A stretch of DNA of 64,000 nucleotides, taken from sequence record MG655267.1; one strand, written 5' to 3'. The notes beneath the pieces were generated by a model that worked only from the letters and a program-made list of their open reading frames with translations, was not told the DNA's origin and searched no databases. This document shows, piece after piece, positions 42,116 through 46,510 of this stretch. Position 1 is the first letter of the stretch. The number at the start of each line of letters is the position of its first letter. The translations under genes were made by a program, and so were the position numbers.

Positions 42116-42468
42116 CAGGTATTTGTAAATAAATACTAGATATCTGCTATTACTATGTAAACTACGACGCTCCGAAAATCCCCCAAGATAAAGGAGTCAT
42201 AACCTCTCCGTTATGCGCCTCGTAGTTTTCTTTTGAGACAGGCAAGGACGTCGACTGGGTTCAGCTGATACTGTAAAGTGTTGCTGTGTGTGCCCGGTCC
42301 CTTGCCGTCTCCTTTTTCTCGATTTGTGCGATTCTCTTCCAGGCTGTTCTTACCTGATCTCGTGTCAGGAAACAGATCGAAGACAGACATGCGAATCAAC
42401 TTTGGTAGTGCCTACTATATACACACTTAGCTGTAAATTTTACTCAAAAGCAATATTAAGGATGACCC

Positions 42469-42636
42469 ATGGACAAGCAGAGAGAAGATTCTATCGTTGA
42501 GATGATGACACTCGCTCAGCGATTAAATAACTTAGTCGTTGGAATGCAAGTCCGCAAAGCCCAGTTAACGTCAGGTTCCGCCAAAGTCGTCGCTGATGCA
42601 ATCAGCAAAGCGAATGTGAAACCTGAGGATCACTGA
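42469..42636 (+). CDS. Small hypothetical protein (55 aa, MDKQREDSIVEMMTLAQRL...), not in the ORF track
   Basis: AAGGA RBS at 42458-62; reads as an amphipathic helix. Confidence 0.6.
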   Translation: MDKQREDSIVEMMTLAQRLNNLVVGMQVRKAQLTSGSAKVVADAISKANVKPEDH

Positions 42637-42796
42637 GGTAGCCGTAAACGTAGTGGGTATGGCGGGGATCAATGATAGCCCTGCTCGGTGAGTTTGTTAA
42701 TCCCCGCCGTATCGCTTCGTAGAACACAGGGTCACTCATGACGTGGGGAGTGGCATAAACACCTGGGGTAGAAGTCCCAACTGCATCCAAAATTCT

Positions 42797-42872
42797 TGGT
42801 CTATAGTTCAGTCGGTAGAACAGCGGACTGTTAATCCGTAGGTCGCTGGTTCGAATCCAGCTAGACCAGCCA
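42797..42872 (+). tRNA. trnN: tRNA-Asn (GTT) with encoded CCA
   Basis: Full cloverleaf: TGGTCTA/TAGACCA acceptor, GTTC/GAAC D-stem, GCGGA-CT-GTT-AA-TCCGT anticodon arm, GCTGG-TTCGAAT-CCAGC T-arm, then G-CCA; 76 nt. Confidence 0.97.
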
Positions 42873-43104
42873 AACAATGACACCCGTCACAGCCGCTTAA
42901 GCGCGCAGAAGATGACTTGTGTGCTCTGTGGCGATACTCGGACTTGCCAGCCTGTGGGGGCGGAGTAAAGTCTGGGTGTTAGCCCGCTGCCATGTTACCA
43001 CGTGAAAGTCGTGGGGGCGTCACCCTATTAGATCGATCGCTGACAGTACGTGTTTATACTTACTTGCTTCTCTGGTTACGCTAACCTATCGTGAGGAGAT
43101 AAAC

Positions 43105-43401
43105 ATGAATCTGTATATAGTCAAACGTGATGATAGAGCTGTGGATTTCGAACAGTGTGCGGGGATGGTGGTTGCTGCGTCGTCTGAGGATGAAGCTTTG
43201 CGATTGCACCCGATGGTTCTTGACTCTAGCCACCCAGACAATGCTGAGCGGCACCTGGCTGAATCGGCGGAGAACTTCGAGGATGGTACGTTGTACGGCT
43301 GGCCTAGCCAGGACCGTTTTCACGAACTGACCATAACCTTGATAGGAACCACACACCTGACTATTCCGCAAGTTCTGTTACTCGACTATAAAGGCGGTTG
43401 A
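43105..43401 (+). CDS. Hypothetical phage protein (98 aa)
   Basis: GAGGAG RBS; the 'MVVAASSEDEALRLHP' motif is one I recall from small phage proteins. Confidence 0.8.
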   Translation: MNLYIVKRDDRAVDFEQCAGMVVAASSEDEALRLHPMVLDSSHPDNAERHLAESAENFEDGTLYGWPSQDRFHELTITLIGTTHLTIPQVLLLDYKGG

Positions 43402-43520
43402 TCTAAGTCCGGGGTAACACCCGGACACCCTATTCTGTTTTTCAGTACATCACTGGAAGATACTATCGAGAGCAGCCACTCCGATACTCTAACTTATAAA
43501 GTTTAAAAAGGATAATAACG

Positions 43521-44174
43521 ATGTCAACCGAAATGACCATTTCTCGTGCACTGGCTACAGTGAAGTCTTTGAATGTCCGCATCAAAGATATCTCTAAAAA
43601 GCAGGTGCTGATTCTGCCAACCGCCGGTACTGGCGACATGCAATCGGTGATCAACAACAGCATCACTGTTACCGATGCTGAAGCCGCCATCCAGAATAAC
43701 TGGAATGCGCTGAACGACATGATCAAAGTGCGTAACGATATTCGTGCGAAGATCATCCTGTCGAACGCCACAACCAAAGTGACCATCGCCGGTAAAGAAT
43801 ACACCATTGTTGAGGCATTGGACTTCCGCAACTCCCTGGTCGAAAAGAAAGACACGGTTGAGTGCCTGAAGCGCAACTACGACTCCACAATGAAAGTTCA
43901 CCGCCAGCAGGGCGACATCTACGAAAAGCGTTTAAGCGATGTGCGCTCCGAAGCCCTGGCCTCCGGCAAGAAGTTTGATGAAGCCAGCTTGAAGACCTTC
44001 ACCGATCCAATCGATGTGAAGATGAAACCAGGCCTGATCGATCCTCTGGGTATCTCAGCAGTTATTGAGAAGCTGGACAAAGAGATCGCTGACTTCGAAC
44101 TTAACGCCGACTACGCGTTGTCCGAATCTAACGCAACGACCAAGATCACTGTTGAACTTGGTAACATTGCTTAA
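43521..44174 (+). CDS. Long helical/coiled-coil protein (217 aa), putative partner of the downstream ncRNA
   Basis: AAGGA RBS; heptad-rich; terminal motifs MTISRALATVKSLNVRI and IDPL...LSESNATTKITVE. Confidence 0.85.
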   Translation: MSTEMTISRALATVKSLNVRIKDISKKQVLILPTAGTGDMQSVINNSITVTDAEAAIQNNWNALNDMIKVRNDIRAKIILSNATTKVTIAGKEYTIVEALDFRNSLVEKKDTVECLKRNYDSTMKVHRQQGDIYEKRLSDVRSEALASGKKFDEASLKTFTDPIDVKMKPGLIDPLGISAVIEKLDKEIADFELNADYALSESNATTKITVELGNIA

Positions 44175-44270
44175 CCCGTATTAAAAGGCTTGTCTTCGTT
44201 TGACGAAAGATCAAACACCGCCTTCCTATTTGGCCGGATGGAAGTAAAATAACCGGCCAGCCATTATACA

Positions 44271-44336
44271 TCTGTAGGTCGCAGGTTCGATTCCTGTCGG
44301 GGTGAAACCCGTAGCTCAGTCGGTTAGAGCAGCAGA
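44271..44336 (+). ncRNA. Circularly permuted tRNA-like domain (T-arm, closed acceptor, D-arm)
   Basis: TCTGT-AGGTC-GCAGG-TTCGATT-CCTGT-CGGG-GTGAAA-CCCG-TA-GCTC-AGTCGGTTA-GAGC-A-GCAGA. Confidence 0.85.
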
Positions 44337-44409
44337 ACAACTGCTTATGCTAAAAGCAATGATCTTTGGGATCATCAATGGTGTACTGTGAGCACCTTGA
44401 AATCACAGG

Positions 44410-44533
44410 TCTAAAGCTTAAAGCTATAACGTATAATGACTAAAGCTCTAAAGGTTTAAACTTATAACGTTAAAAAGATCTACACTCCCTGATGACTGTG
44501 TTCGTCGGGCTATAACGCTAAAACCTTTTAAAC
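44410..44533 (+). repeat. Imperfect 7-9-nt tandem units (N-N-TAAAG / N-TATAAC)
   Basis: TCTAAAG CTTAAAG CTATAAC GTATAAT GACTAAAG CTCTAAAG GTTTAAA CTTATAAC GTTAAAAAG (44410-77), then CTATAAC GCTAAAAC CTTTTAAAC (44510-33). Confidence 0.75.
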
Positions 44534-44648
44534 AAATCCTGGGTATTCCTCCGCTGTGAGGATGGGTAATGTGGAGTGTGGTCTGCCACGTATCGCCGCC
44601 AGGCTGTCTTGCGGAGACAAGTCTTTCCCTTTTGCAATAGGTGACCTA

Positions 44649-44819
44649 ATGACAGGCACTGCATTAATGATCATTGAGCAACCACAACCGGAATTCAATA
44701 TCCCGTTGAGGTCGCCTTATCCTACCCTTCATGACGTAAGGTTTTCTATGTTCCCTGTTATGGGTGAACCTGAGAACGAAGGGTTTGAACAAGATTCAGA
44801 AACTGACGCATTACATTGA
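44649..44819 (+). CDS. Small acidic hypothetical protein (56 aa)
   Basis: AGGTGA RBS before the ATG at 44649; the ORF-track start (44556) lies inside the structured RNA. Confidence 0.5.
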   Translation: MTGTALMIIEQPQPEFNIPLRSPYPTLHDVRFSMFPVMGEPENEGFEQDSETDALH

Positions 44820-44860
44820 GGAGATTCAATCGCGCAGGTTCTTAACCGACTAACGCCAGG

Positions 44861-45088
44861 GTGACTTGTGTTATCTTGGTAAAAGGTGAACGCGTCGTTA
44901 CAGCGCATACGACTGAATGGGCCGATCCCCCCTTCGGAGTAATATTAGCCCAGATCCATTGCACACCGATAAGTCAATGGCTAGCCAGACACACAAAAAA
45001 CTATTATGCTTCGACAGATGGTAGGTGCCTGATTACTACAATTCGATTCGATACCTCAACTAAAAGGCGGACACAAGGGCCGTTATGA
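44861..45088 (+). CDS. Possible small protein (75 aa)
   Basis: GTG-start ORF with a weak RBS. Confidence 0.35.
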   Translation: MTCVILVKGERVVTAHTTEWADPPFGVILAQIHCTPISQWLARHTKNYYASTDGRCLITTIRFDTSTKRRTQGPL

Positions 45089-45108
45089 GTGAAGCACCAG
45101 GAAACTAT

Positions 45109-45160
45109 ACCTTGGTAAGGCCCCAGGCTTTTTATCCTTACCAAGGTTCTCTTTCTTTTA
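45109..45160 (+). terminator. Intrinsic terminator-like hairpin
   Basis: ACCTTGGTAAGG/CCTTACCAAGGT 12-bp perfect stem followed by a T-rich tract. Confidence 0.6.
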
Positions 45161-45267
45161 CTACCTGATAATGGGTGGATGCCTTAGTCACCTTTCTTTC
45201 ACAGAGGCAACAACCTAAGGCGTCTGCCCGCCCTATAACCCGAGTCGTCTAGCGACAAGACACCGTC

Positions 45268-45348
45268 AGACCCATTTGGTAACAGCCTAACTTACCTGTT
45301 ACCCAACCTATGACGGAAACAGGTGGTTCAACTCCACCTCTTGGGTCT
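45268..45348 (+). ncRNA. tRNA-like fold with a T-loop arm and no canonical anticodon arm
   Basis: AGACCCA/TGGGTCT closing stem, GGTAACAG/CTGTTACC hairpin and AGGTGG-TTCAACT-CCACCT T-arm. Confidence 0.5.
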
Positions 45349-45431
45349 TAGGTATTGGCTTAGGCAAACTCCGTCGCGGCTTTACCCTCAATAGGCTGCG
45401 TTGCGTAAGTCAGTACCGTGCTGTGCGTCGT

Positions 45432-45580
45432 ACTCCCTGATGAGGCGCCCGACGTTAAAAGGCACGAAACGGGGACAGAGGATACTCCATCGGTGATTGC
45501 AATCAACCACGCTGGGGTTTATACAGGCACTTGAGAGACACGCTGGTTTCTCGTTGCCTGTCCCTTTGTCCCGTCGGAGT
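45432..45580 (+). ncRNA. Hammerhead ribozyme (type I topology) with a large stem-III insertion
   Basis: Stem I ACTCC/GGAGT; core CTGATGA (45437-43); imperfect stem II; GAAA (45466-69); stem III ACGGG(G)ACA/TGTCCCGT; GTC cleavage triplet at 45573-75. Confidence 0.75.
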
Positions 45581-45984
45581 CCCTTGCGTTCCTGGAGGGA
45601 TGACACCGCGTTAAGACTGATCCCCTTAACGAAGTTGCAATAGCCGGGGGTGATTCTTGCAAAGGTTACTCACAGCAGACTGCCTCCGCCAATTGCGGAT
45701 GGCTTAGGCCCTCAGTCCGTCAGGAAGTTGTCGTTGAATAAGTGACAGCTGGACTAGGGTTGCATTATAACCCGGCAAGTGTGCAGCCTGTTTTTTCTTC
45801 ATGTGTACCTGAACCGGTTCAGGAGCCTACAGATGAGGGAACGACGGGAAGCATATTGCTACCGATCATTTGCTGTGTGACCGGGCCAAGGATGGCATAT
45901 ACCGGAACCAGTAACCGTATTCAGCGCAGGTGCGCTTTCTCTTCCTTATCTTGTGGTTAAACCGCGCCTGTCTGGATCATATGT

Positions 45985-46012
45985 GCCGGGGTCACACCTG
46001 GCGCTTATGCCG
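45985..46012 (+). terminator. Hairpin plus TTATGCCG closing the RNA island
   Basis: GCCGGG-GTCACA-CCTGGC, then TTATGC at 46005-46010. Confidence 0.6.
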
Positions 46013-46037
46013 TCTGAGTTGTATCCTTTTTTACTCC

Positions 46038-46045
46038 TACATTAC
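46038..46045 (+). promoter_or_regulatory. Early promoter-like box TACATTAC
   Basis: One mismatch to the consensus, about 28 nt after TTATGC. Confidence 0.55.
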
Positions 46046-46087
46046 GAAGCTGATATACCCATCAATTCAATTTAAAGGAGTTTAGTT

Positions 46088-46510
46088 ATGAAGAACGTTA
46101 CTATTGCTATTGGTCGTAATCCGCTGTCCAACCAGAAATGGATTCTGGATCAGATCGTGAGTCTGGTGAAGTCCGGTAAGTCCGACATCTTCATCGTCAA
46201 TACCGACTCACGGGTTTCCACTGCGGTACTCAATGCCTTGAAAGAGTATACGAAGGATGATGCGGAATACACTCGCTTGGTTGCTGAGAACGGTGTCATG
46301 TTCCACACAACCGAGACCGAAGACCTGCAAACGCTGGATGATGCTAAGATGAACAGCCGGTCGGCGATTCTGGCCAACATGCTGTTCAGCCTGCCATTGG
46401 TCAAACAGTGTCGTGATCTGGCGCGTCATCACGTCCCGGTCTTTGTGAGTGCCACACCTGCCATGTCTGGTAAGGTGCCGGCTTCCGCCCATACCAAGTT
46501 CCTCGATTAA
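46088..46510 (+). CDS. Hypothetical protein (140 aa)
   Basis: AAGGAG RBS. Confidence 0.8.
   Translation: MKNVTIAIGRNPLSNQKWILDQIVSLVKSGKSDIFIVNTDSRVSTAVLNALKEYTKDDAEYTRLVAENGVMFHTTETEDLQTLDDAKMNSRSAILANMLFSLPLVKQCRDLARHHVPVFVSATPAMSGKVPASAHTKFLD

Follow-up and report, generated by a model that had tools for sequence, protein, structure and literature searches.

A gene and a structured RNA in a jumbo phage of Erwinia

In a 64,000-nucleotide (nt) stretch of sequence record MG655267.1, the whole of which is referred to here as the window, a gene for a 217-amino-acid (aa) helical protein is followed on the same strand by a structured non-coding RNA of 442 nt. An earlier reading of the window by a model, made from the letters and a list of open reading frames (ORFs) and called here the original prediction, had proposed that the protein oligomerizes on repeat units of this RNA, and that similar units on the ribosome-binding region of the gene serve to autoregulate its translation. 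Window positions 43400-46100 are 100% identical to Erwinia phage vB_EamM_Bosolaphorus, and window position 43521 is position 167521 of the record. Bosolaphorus is a 272-kb jumbo phage of the genus Agricanvirus, with Ea35-70, RAY and Deimos-Minion as near relatives and Erwinia phage AH06, approximately 81% identical, as the next-nearest. The elements of the gene and the RNA are the following.

43491..43520, plus strand: leader of the gene, with three repeat-like units (TAAAG at 43497, AAAAG at 43506, TAACG at 43516)
43521..44174, plus strand: gene for the 217-aa helical protein, phrog_1491 (ORF calling, profile match)
44184..44625, plus strand: whole structured non-coding RNA, 442 nt (folding z-score, covariation, recurrence)
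44185..44208, plus strand: 5' strand of the closing helix P1 (44185-44205, pairing with 44605-44625) and junction motif CGAAA (44204-44208)
44222..44259, plus strand: H-type pseudoknot (RNAalifold stem A; complementary stems that vary with lineage)
44222-44226 / 44240-44244, plus strand: pseudoknot stem A, CUUCC / GGAAG
44231-44237 / 44253-44259, plus strand: pseudoknot stem B, UGGCCGG / CCGGCCA
44271..44336, plus strand: permuted tRNA mimic of the YrlA type (Rfam YrlA match, covariation)
44271-44275 / 44332-44336, plus strand: closing stem of the mimic
44281-44297, plus strand: T arm of the mimic
44298-44311, plus strand: closed acceptor-like hairpin of the mimic
44314-44330, plus strand: D arm of the mimic
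44408..44535, plus strand: array of approximately 7-nt units (repeat and tandem-repeat tools)
44532..44606, plus strand: 3' domain, with AAAUCC, the helix CCUGG 44538-44542 / CCAGG 44599-44603, internal hairpins and the junction CUG (44604-44606)
44605..44625, plus strand: 3' strand of P1, followed by a U-rich run (UUUCCCUUUUG) (inverted repeat, RNAduplex, covariation, fold)

The ATG of the gene at 43521 lies 8 nt after the sequence AAGGA, and homologs likewise begin with MSTEMT; the peptide given in the original prediction started at Met5 of this ORF. The plus strand contains no ORF of 60 aa or more at 44175-44555, and no sigma-70-like promoter was found on this strand near the gene or the RNA. 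The 3' end of the RNA, which had been placed at 44635, was corrected to 44625.

The RNA fold is conserved by compensatory changes and accompanies the gene

Folding of 44184-44625 as a single sequence gave -141 kcal/mol, with a z-score of -4.06 relative to dinucleotide shuffles, and recovered P1 and three tRNA-like arms. For comparative analysis, eleven jumbo-type RNAs (those of the window, AH06, SA002, pEa_SNUABM_37 and seven metagenomic contigs) were aligned using MAFFT without structural guidance. The RNAalifold consensus of this alignment contained P1 and stem A of the pseudoknot as well as the four-way tRNA-like domain and a 3' hairpin, and compensatory changes were observed at 28 of its 56 pairs. 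With stem B added, the 60 pairs were 91.4% paired and 32 of them had changed on both sides; none of 500 shuffles was as good in the pair counts, and slid registers were approximately 40% paired. The stretch of many helices that had been noticed after the gene is therefore borne out by both the single-sequence fold and the compensatory changes.

The same RNA was found 3' of the gene in at least 85 of the 90 homologous loci examined, the loci read being annotated gaps together with 80 IMG/VR loci and eight metagenomic jumbo-phage loci, and in all annotated homologous loci retrieved, the gene is succeeded by 340-640 nt of noncoding sequence. The lineages that carry the RNA include T5-like, rV5-like, Pseudomonas, Vibrio, Bacillus and Clostridium phages as well as metagenomic contigs, which agrees with the earlier proposal of a pairing of protein gene and RNA. 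Across these lineages, the RNA is 290-445 nt long and is separated from the stop codon of the gene by 5-65 nt, with both on the same strand; a piecewise search of the phage genome found a single copy. Its layout, seen in approximately 87 loci, is from 5' to 3' a strand ending in CGAAA, an H-type pseudoknot whose third loop is A-rich, a region that varies, A-rich units, AAAUCC-YRG...CYR-GGCUG and a strand complementary to the first. The sequences of the helices are entirely different between lineages, which amounts to strong covariation.

This could be followed helix by helix. A 15-nt inverted repeat links 44184-44198 with 44612-44626, and RNAduplex found the P1 closing helix in approximately 87 loci, at -17 to -44 kcal/mol. 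Among 32 distinct P1 sequences, 12.8 of 14 positions paired in cognate combinations versus 9.1 in non-cognate ones, and within the eleven jumbo-type RNAs, double-sided changes were seen at 12 of 19 P1 pairs. P1 is flanked by CGAAA and GGCUG, and CGAAA or a one-base variant of it is present in most lineages. In the pseudoknot, where the linker UAAAAUAA is A-rich, both stems have differing yet complementary sequences in every listed lineage, those of stem B being unrelated across approximately 25 lineages. Stem B was only 67.5% paired in the MAFFT alignment because one subgroup is moved by a single column; by eye, each row pairs. A generic pseudoknot finder was too permissive to be informative, with shuffles scoring almost as high, so that the pseudoknot rests on positional consistency and covariation.

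The 5-base-pair (bp) helix of the 3' domain occurs in 18 sequence variants, and its covariation score in a MAFFT alignment of 32 lineages was 0.575 versus 0.16 for shuffled sequences (0 of 500), with slid registers giving approximately 45% pairing. The 100% pairing of this helix arises partly by construction, since the helix was a search criterion, but the variety of its pair types does not. A covariance model of the 3' domain yielded exactly one match, on the strand of the gene and downstream of it, in 13 loci that were outside the seed or had failed the rules, and one match in the whole Bosolaphorus genome, searched in pieces. The model had no match in a control locus and failed on the SA002-type subgroup, in which the junction is GGUCUG. 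We regard both the RNA and its pairing with the gene as almost certainly real. Gene and RNA constitute a conserved two-part module found in hundreds of large lytic phages, T5-like phages among them.

Heptad units of the RNA recur in the leader of the gene

The repeat tract that the original prediction had recognized was located at 44408-44478, with a period of 7 nt rather than the 7-9 nt stated. Positions 44412-44477 hold eight units, and a hairpin at approximately 44487-44510 separates these from a further two, at 44513 and 44529. The unit consensus is U-Y-A-A-A-G-N, and the forms found in the window are YUAAAG, AUAACG, UUAAAC and UUAAAAAG. In 32 lineages, the spacing of AAAG/AACG cores peaked at 7 nt (36 cases) and 14 nt (28 cases), and the arrays, of 8-14 units, span approximately 60-100 nt. 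The RNAalifold consensus of the eleven RNAs contained no conserved pairing in the repeat tract.

The units in the gene leader overlap the Shine-Dalgarno sequence AAGGA at 43508-43512, and leader positions 43491-43508 are 89% identical to tract positions 44459-44476. Three or more units per 40 nt were found at only six places in the window (128 kb, counting both strands), the tract and the leader being among them, and the motifs CTTATAAMGTT and TATAAMGYT occur within the 64 kb in the leader and the tract only. The possibility that the repeat is a general phage promoter or a common motif was rejected on account of this confinement and of the absence of a sigma-70-like plus-strand promoter near the gene or the RNA.

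The leader copies claimed for the window extend to its relatives. In 32 lineages, leaders (50 nt before the start codon) shared 226 6-mers with their own tract, versus 146.7 ± 14 after dinucleotide shuffling (0 of 500). Per leader, a mean of 7.5 6-mers was shared, as compared to 3.2 for 90 leaders of neighboring genes (p = 2e-7), and the values were 7.4 and 4.5 in an A+T-matched comparison (p = 0.0025). A unit was present between -45 and -12 in 25 of the 32 leaders, mostly at -25 to -16, immediately ahead of the Shine-Dalgarno sequence, and the number of units per leader was 1.16 versus 0.59 ± 0.12 in shuffled sequences.

The protein is a putative distant relative of DIP1984

Residues 1-212 of the protein matched positions 1-210 of the 211 in the phrog_1491 profile (E = 1e-72), which carries the label "tail fiber protein". 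No Pfam match was obtained for the window protein, and an NCBIfam search gave matches at noise level only. Using tblastn, homologs were found in 724 phage records of many families and hosts, among them T5-like phages of Salmonella and Escherichia, rV5-like phages of Klebsiella, Cronobacter and Enterobacter, Pseudomonas phiPsa374-like phages, Vibrio phages, Bacillus Herelleviridae and Clostridium phage phiCD211. An AlphaFold2 model built from 94 homologs (mean predicted local distance difference test score, pLDDT, 88.3) was mostly helical, as had been anticipated, with long helical hairpins and short strands at one end. SNATT-type motifs are conserved at residues 81-85 and 203-207.

The Corynebacterium diphtheriae protein 3kdq, which we take to be DIP1984, was the top match both in a profile search of the PDB (E = 0.005) and with Foldseek (probability 1.0, E = 0.012, template modeling scores 0.40/0.55), and Pfam DUF6847 (PF20935) gave weak matches in 5 of the 94 homologs, the best at E = 8.6e-4. 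The likeness to DIP1984/DUF6847 that the original prediction had pointed to was thus weakly supported by the structure search and by a few homologs, but not by a Pfam match of the window protein itself. The apparent shared feature is a helical hairpin bundle with short strands; the phage proteins are approximately 60 residues longer, and the DUF6847 family is itself without known function. The support for the relationship is weak but real, and we consider the protein to be a putative distant DIP1984/DUF6847 relative.

The label "tail fiber protein" is probably a misannotation, because the fold is not fiber-like and the context is one of early genes and tRNA regions; in the T5-like phage Shivani, the gene lies among early genes (RNase H, exonuclease, HNH nuclease and tRNA genes). 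Two other identities were rejected. A supposed tandem paralog upstream of the gene in one locus (L097) had a BLASTP E value of 6.5, and the T5 anti-retron protein Rad, which is encoded in the tRNA region, is a different protein, of 189 aa with a Toprim-type domain (10.1101/2023.03.15.532788). A search of three family members against the PADLOC defense profiles yielded no convincing match; the lone match was to an oligonucleotide-cyclase profile (E = 0.0054, 13.9 bits), in the Bacillus phage member.

A lineage-specific tRNA mimic and the tRNA context of the RNA

In a permissive Rfam search, 44273-44336 matched positions 23-87 of the YrlA model with 44.5 bits (E = 8e-8), where the gathering score is 69. 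The arms follow in the order T arm, closed acceptor-like hairpin, D arm, and they covary, in accordance with the permuted tRNA mimic of the original prediction: double-sided changes were found at 5 of 5 pairs of the acceptor-like hairpin, 3 of 5 pairs of the closing stem and 2 of 5 pairs of the T arm. The acceptor-like hairpin is CGGG/CCCG in the window and UAGCC/GGCUA in AH06, and the closing stem occurs as UCUGU/GCAGA (window; ACAGA in most relatives), ACUUU/AAAGU and UCUUU/AAAGA. ARAGORN reported no tRNA or transfer-messenger RNA (tmRNA) at the mimic.

Two other identities of this element were considered. Two adjacent tRNAs or a decayed tRNA gene were rejected on the grounds that the closed 4-5-bp acceptor-like hairpin is kept by compensatory changes and that the ARAGORN search was empty. 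A permuted or two-piece tmRNA was rejected as neither ARAGORN nor Rfam gave a tmRNA match; the mimic moreover lies inside the RNA, and stop codons recur in the A-rich tract at intervals of 7-8 nt.

The mimic was found only in the jumbo-phage branch and in one other contig, L074, at the variable position of the RNA, which elsewhere is occupied by other inserts; the T5-like RNAs have other hairpins there, without a YrlA match. It is therefore a lineage-specific insert and not a core part of the system. The original prediction had named co-conservation of repeats, leader copies and tRNA-like domain among homologs as support for the system; it was seen for the repeats and the leader copies but not for the tRNA-like domain.

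tRNA genes lie within 1.5 kb of the RNA, on the same strand, in approximately 31 of 45 loci, and a tRNA often starts a few bases past the 3' strand of P1. In five rV5-like loci (L006, L014, L017, L048 and L055), tRNA-Thr (TGT) begins right after the RNA, and in one metagenomic contig, a complete tRNA-Thr (TGT) is located inside the variable region of the RNA (L053, 2235-2311). The sole match reported by ARAGORN, and by Rfam at gathering thresholds, is a tRNA-Asn (GTT) at 42797-42872 on the plus strand (76.4 bits in Rfam), which is missing from the features annotated for this region in the RefSeq relative Deimos-Minion. Two annotated genes of Bosolaphorus, gp49 for an RtcB-like RNA ligase (record 44975-46213, L101) and gp83 for an RNA 2'-phosphotransferase (record 68255-68836, L102), make up, by their annotation, a tRNA repair toolkit. 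In Klebsiella phage NDO71, an annotated "tRNA-Cys" (L006, 2186-2261) covers the start of the RNA, namely a terminator-like hairpin and the 5' strand of P1, and is unsupported by ARAGORN or Rfam; the same record assigns several genuine tRNAs to the wrong strand.

A proposed model of heptad binding and autoregulation

The best-supported model is one in which the protein binds the heptad units and controls its own synthesis through the leader, to which, on the basis of sequence comparison, we assign a probability of roughly 0.45. The RNA would probably be transcribed with the gene or with neighboring tRNA genes and would probably accumulate as a stable species, its ends guarded by P1; where a tRNA comes next, as in many phages, maturation of that tRNA would define the 3' end. 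The protein would recognize the heptad units and load in multiple copies along the array, which the folded domains of the RNA would hold and present. In the leader, the units that precede the Shine-Dalgarno sequence, from one to three in number, would act as a weaker operator, such that once the array had been filled, free protein would repress its own translation. This logic may be likened to the autoregulation of T4 gp32 and RegA combined with a multi-site RNA of the CsrB type.

The T4 gp32 operator consists of a pseudoknot and UUAAA/UAAA repeats. The module described here shares with gp32, RegA and CsrA-CsrB, taken together, the A/U-rich repeat units near the ribosome-binding site (RBS) of the regulator's own mRNA, a pseudoknot beside unstructured repeats and a separate RNA that contains many copies of the site. 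It differs in its protein, a putative binder that is helical and DIP1984-like and has neither an OB fold nor a CsrA fold, and in the location of the repeats, which are mainly in an ornate RNA downstream of the gene and less in the leader. A type III toxin-antitoxin system of the ToxIN kind, in which repeats of approximately 34-36 nt are combined with an endoribonuclease toxin, was rejected, given a period of 7 nt and a protein model that is a helical bundle.

The tRNA-cluster context, the tRNA and mimic inserts and the annotated RtcB-like and RNA 2'-phosphotransferase genes suggest that the particle might function in the maintenance of tRNAs and translation during infection, or as a decoy for tRNA-directed host nucleases. 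In its fullest form, the proposal would be that of a widespread phage ribonucleoprotein, with one DIP1984-like subunit per 7-nt unit on a scaffolded array and feedback at the RBS, which protects or redirects the tRNA-translation apparatus; this extended version is tentative, and we think it rather less likely to hold than to fail.

Several observations weigh against heptad binding with autoregulation. The protein family is near-neutral in charge (median isoelectric point 6.1), which neither favors nor excludes RNA binding; K15 is its sole nearly invariant basic residue, and searches of Pfam, NCBIfam and Foldseek recognized no known RNA-binding fold. The enrichment of units in the leaders is significant but modest, at about one unit each, and A/U-rich phage leaders are common. 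P1 and the 3' helix were located by rule-based searches, so that their pairing was partly selected, to which the non-cognate, slid-register and covariance-model controls are only a partial answer. In addition, a hairpin resembling an intrinsic terminator lies between gene and RNA in several phages (L012 and L013), and an extra ORF separates the two in L083; gene and RNA therefore need not share one transcript. Adjacency alone could reflect shared regulation instead of physical interaction.

Alternative explanations

These same terminator-like hairpins, together with the neutral charge of the protein and its lack of a recognized RNA-binding domain, would speak for a reading in which the RNA is a protein-independent, stable product of the tRNA cluster, matured from a tRNA precursor transcript. 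T4 species 1 and 2 RNAs probably mature in this manner. Such an RNA might form an RNA-only assembly or act as a decoy for host factors with affinity for single-stranded A-rich RNA or for tRNA-like folds, with S1, Hfq, RNase E or Y, and tRNA-directed nucleases or modification enzymes as candidate targets, and the gene would be adjacent merely through shared transcription or regional ancestry. tRNA genes flank or follow the RNA in most loci, one of them being embedded in it in L053, and GOLLD and ROOL, which are likewise large, elaborate RNAs of phages and prophages in the vicinity of tRNA genes and in some cases contain a tRNA themselves, assemble into RNA-only complexes (PMC5737381; PMC12286853). 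The RNA described here differs from these in its smaller size, its heptad array and its tie to one protein gene, and the GOLLD and ROOL models of Rfam had no match in the window or in 19 related loci. Adjacency and co-orientation of gene and RNA are kept across phage families that otherwise share little, while the downstream neighbors vary (HNH nuclease, tRNAs, terminators, phosphoribosyl pyrophosphate synthetase), and the presence of tract units in the gene's own leader, and not in those of its neighbors, would be left unexplained. We consider a stand-alone RNA a serious alternative, although a somewhat unlikely one.

The position of the RNA 5-65 nt after the stop codon, on the same strand and with a closing helix that could block 3' exonucleases, would also fit a cis-acting 3' untranslated element that stabilizes, localizes, times or processes the mRNA of the 217-aa protein and has no function in trans. 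An element of approximately 350-450 nt with a pseudoknot, an array, conserved junctions and tRNA-type inserts exceeds the needs of an mRNA stabilizer, a terminator-like hairpin or an extra ORF can intervene, and the tRNAs directly downstream imply processing that frees the RNA. This explanation appears improbable.

The YrlA match and the same permuted arm order raise the question of whether the RNA is a bona fide Y RNA, which would connect an exoribonuclease with a Ro60 (Rsr) ring, as Y RNAs of Deinococcus and Salmonella do. In Salmonella, RtcB is encoded in one operon with rsr and yrlA, and the phage of the window also encodes an RtcB-like ligase. Both the mimic and the YrlA family have a permuted tRNA-like module closed by a stem, and YrlA-type RNAs, the partners of Ro60 in bacteria and phages, are also phage-borne (PMC4201824). 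In the present RNA, however, the module is an insert in a much larger RNA, has a closing stem of 5 bp and is missing from most lineages, T5-like phages included; the match is below the gathering score, and model positions 1-22 and 88-114, which include the Ro-binding terminal stem, are unmatched. A tblastn search of the whole Bosolaphorus genome, in pieces, with the Ro-like protein of Enterococcus phage EFDG1 as the query found no Ro60-like protein (best E = 0.3), whereas the same query matched 712 other phage records. Membership in the Y RNA family is thus largely refuted and very improbable; the mimic is akin to the effector module of YrlA, a putative assignment, and the RNA itself is not a member of that family.

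The classical arrangement is found in EFDG1. Three YrlA-like RNAs occur there in a row (L004, 1373-1473, 2802-2909 and 2980-3103), all unannotated, upstream of a gene for a 510-aa DUF2828/DUF7788/vWA "RNA-binding protein" (L004, 3341-4873). This is a phage Ro60-Y RNA locus, situated inside a tRNA cluster.

A chance origin, as an AT-rich spacer with a decayed tRNA and low-complexity repeats, might be entertained for the motif CTTATAAMGTT, which with up to one mismatch has 3 matches versus 1.4 expected and alone is not rare enough, but it is refuted by the comparative data, which reveal an architecture kept with compensatory changes over dozens of lineages and in hosts of two bacterial phyla.

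Relation to catalogued RNAs and significance

The 5' domain of the RNA in one sub-lineage is already catalogued as an orphan motif, RAGATH-27 (RF03100, 86 nt). The RAGATH-27 model aligned end-to-end with the start of the RNA in L054 (62.5 bits) and L064 (48.8 bits), covering the end of the 5' strand of P1, CGAAAA and the pseudoknot region, with scores under the gathering score of 76.1. In the window RNA, where the model had no match at E values up to 10, the same elements occur in the same order by inspection and by rule-based search, a putative homology drawn through intermediates. The Rfam model has one hairpin and is without the P1 partner, the pseudoknot, the heptad array and the 3' domain; RAGATH-27 was not found to have a recorded function or protein partner. 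The RAGATH motifs reportedly come from a ribozyme paper in Nature Chemical Biology in 2015. A second orphan Rfam motif, RAGATH-36, narrowly missed the threshold at sites next to the module in two gut-type phage contigs (L064, 2502-2653; L084, 1-65).

As the original prediction had stated, no described function was found for the pairing, apart from the prior listing of the 5' domain of some relatives. Likewise, neither Rfam 15 nor the searchable literature, within limited libraries, was found to describe the RNA in full, its association with phrog_1491, the heptad array or the copies of the units in the leader. The parts have known kin, in the ornate phage RNAs of tRNA clusters, in multi-site RNAs with autoregulated binders and in tRNA mimicry of the Y-RNA type. 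With some of its parts already catalogued and its mechanism still a proposed one, the module is not categorically new.

More than 700 sequenced phages carry the module, the long-studied T5-like phages among them, and databases show it as a "tail fiber protein" and an unannotated gap. The annotation of large phages would thereby gain an RNA gene and shed a structural-protein label that is probably wrong. GOLLD, ROOL and T4 species 1 and 2 resist functional explanation, and this RNA brings with it a candidate partner gene, a repeat motif and a clue in the leader. Binding, regulation and phenotype are directly testable in T5 and E. coli K-12. The module also appears to link several orphans, namely RAGATH-27 and the DIP1984/DUF6847 fold, with the tRNA-mimic module of Y RNAs, which can be built into another RNA in the absence of Ro60. 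If true, the ribonucleoprotein proposal would provide RAGATH-27 and the DUF6847 fold with a first function.

Flanking features

A further feature lies between the module and the gene upstream of it.

43407..43426, plus strand: G+C-rich hairpin followed by a T-rich run, 3' of the upstream gene (43105-43401)

Read by eye, this hairpin is GTCCGGGG-taaca-CCCGGAC, followed by ...ctgttttt, and it probably separates the transcript of gene 43105-43401 from the module; as it was absent from the output of a simple terminator scan, its terminator role remains one read from the sequence. The segments on either side of the tRNA-Asn, 42116-42796 and 42873-43104, are without a convincing ORF.

Directly 3' of the RNA, a 56-aa ORF (44649-44819, plus strand) belongs to phrog_10783. 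Its C-terminal acidic motif, EPENEGFEQDS, is also found in AH06, and ORFs of 57 aa that start with MTGTAL, as the 56-aa ORF does, likewise come after the RNA in L092 and L093. The GTG-started ORF at 44556-44819, which is annotated in some records and overlaps the 3' domain of the RNA, is probably mis-started.

Beyond it, 44830-46087 on the plus strand comprises 1.26 kb without an annotated gene in most Agricanvirus records and without an Rfam match. Many G+C-rich inverted repeats are visible by eye, conservation at the DNA level is confined to the genus, and the AH06 equivalent is broken by a 172-aa ORF (L002, 4716-5234). This segment may be a second large non-coding RNA. In Salmonella phage SA002, a weak match to a type III hammerhead ribozyme (L003, 7354-7406; 30.5 bits, E = 0.008) is located 3 kb downstream of the module, and in Erwinia phage pEa_SNUABM_37, a Tad2-like gene of the anti-Thoeris family (L099, 3313-3567) lies approximately 0.7 kb downstream of it.

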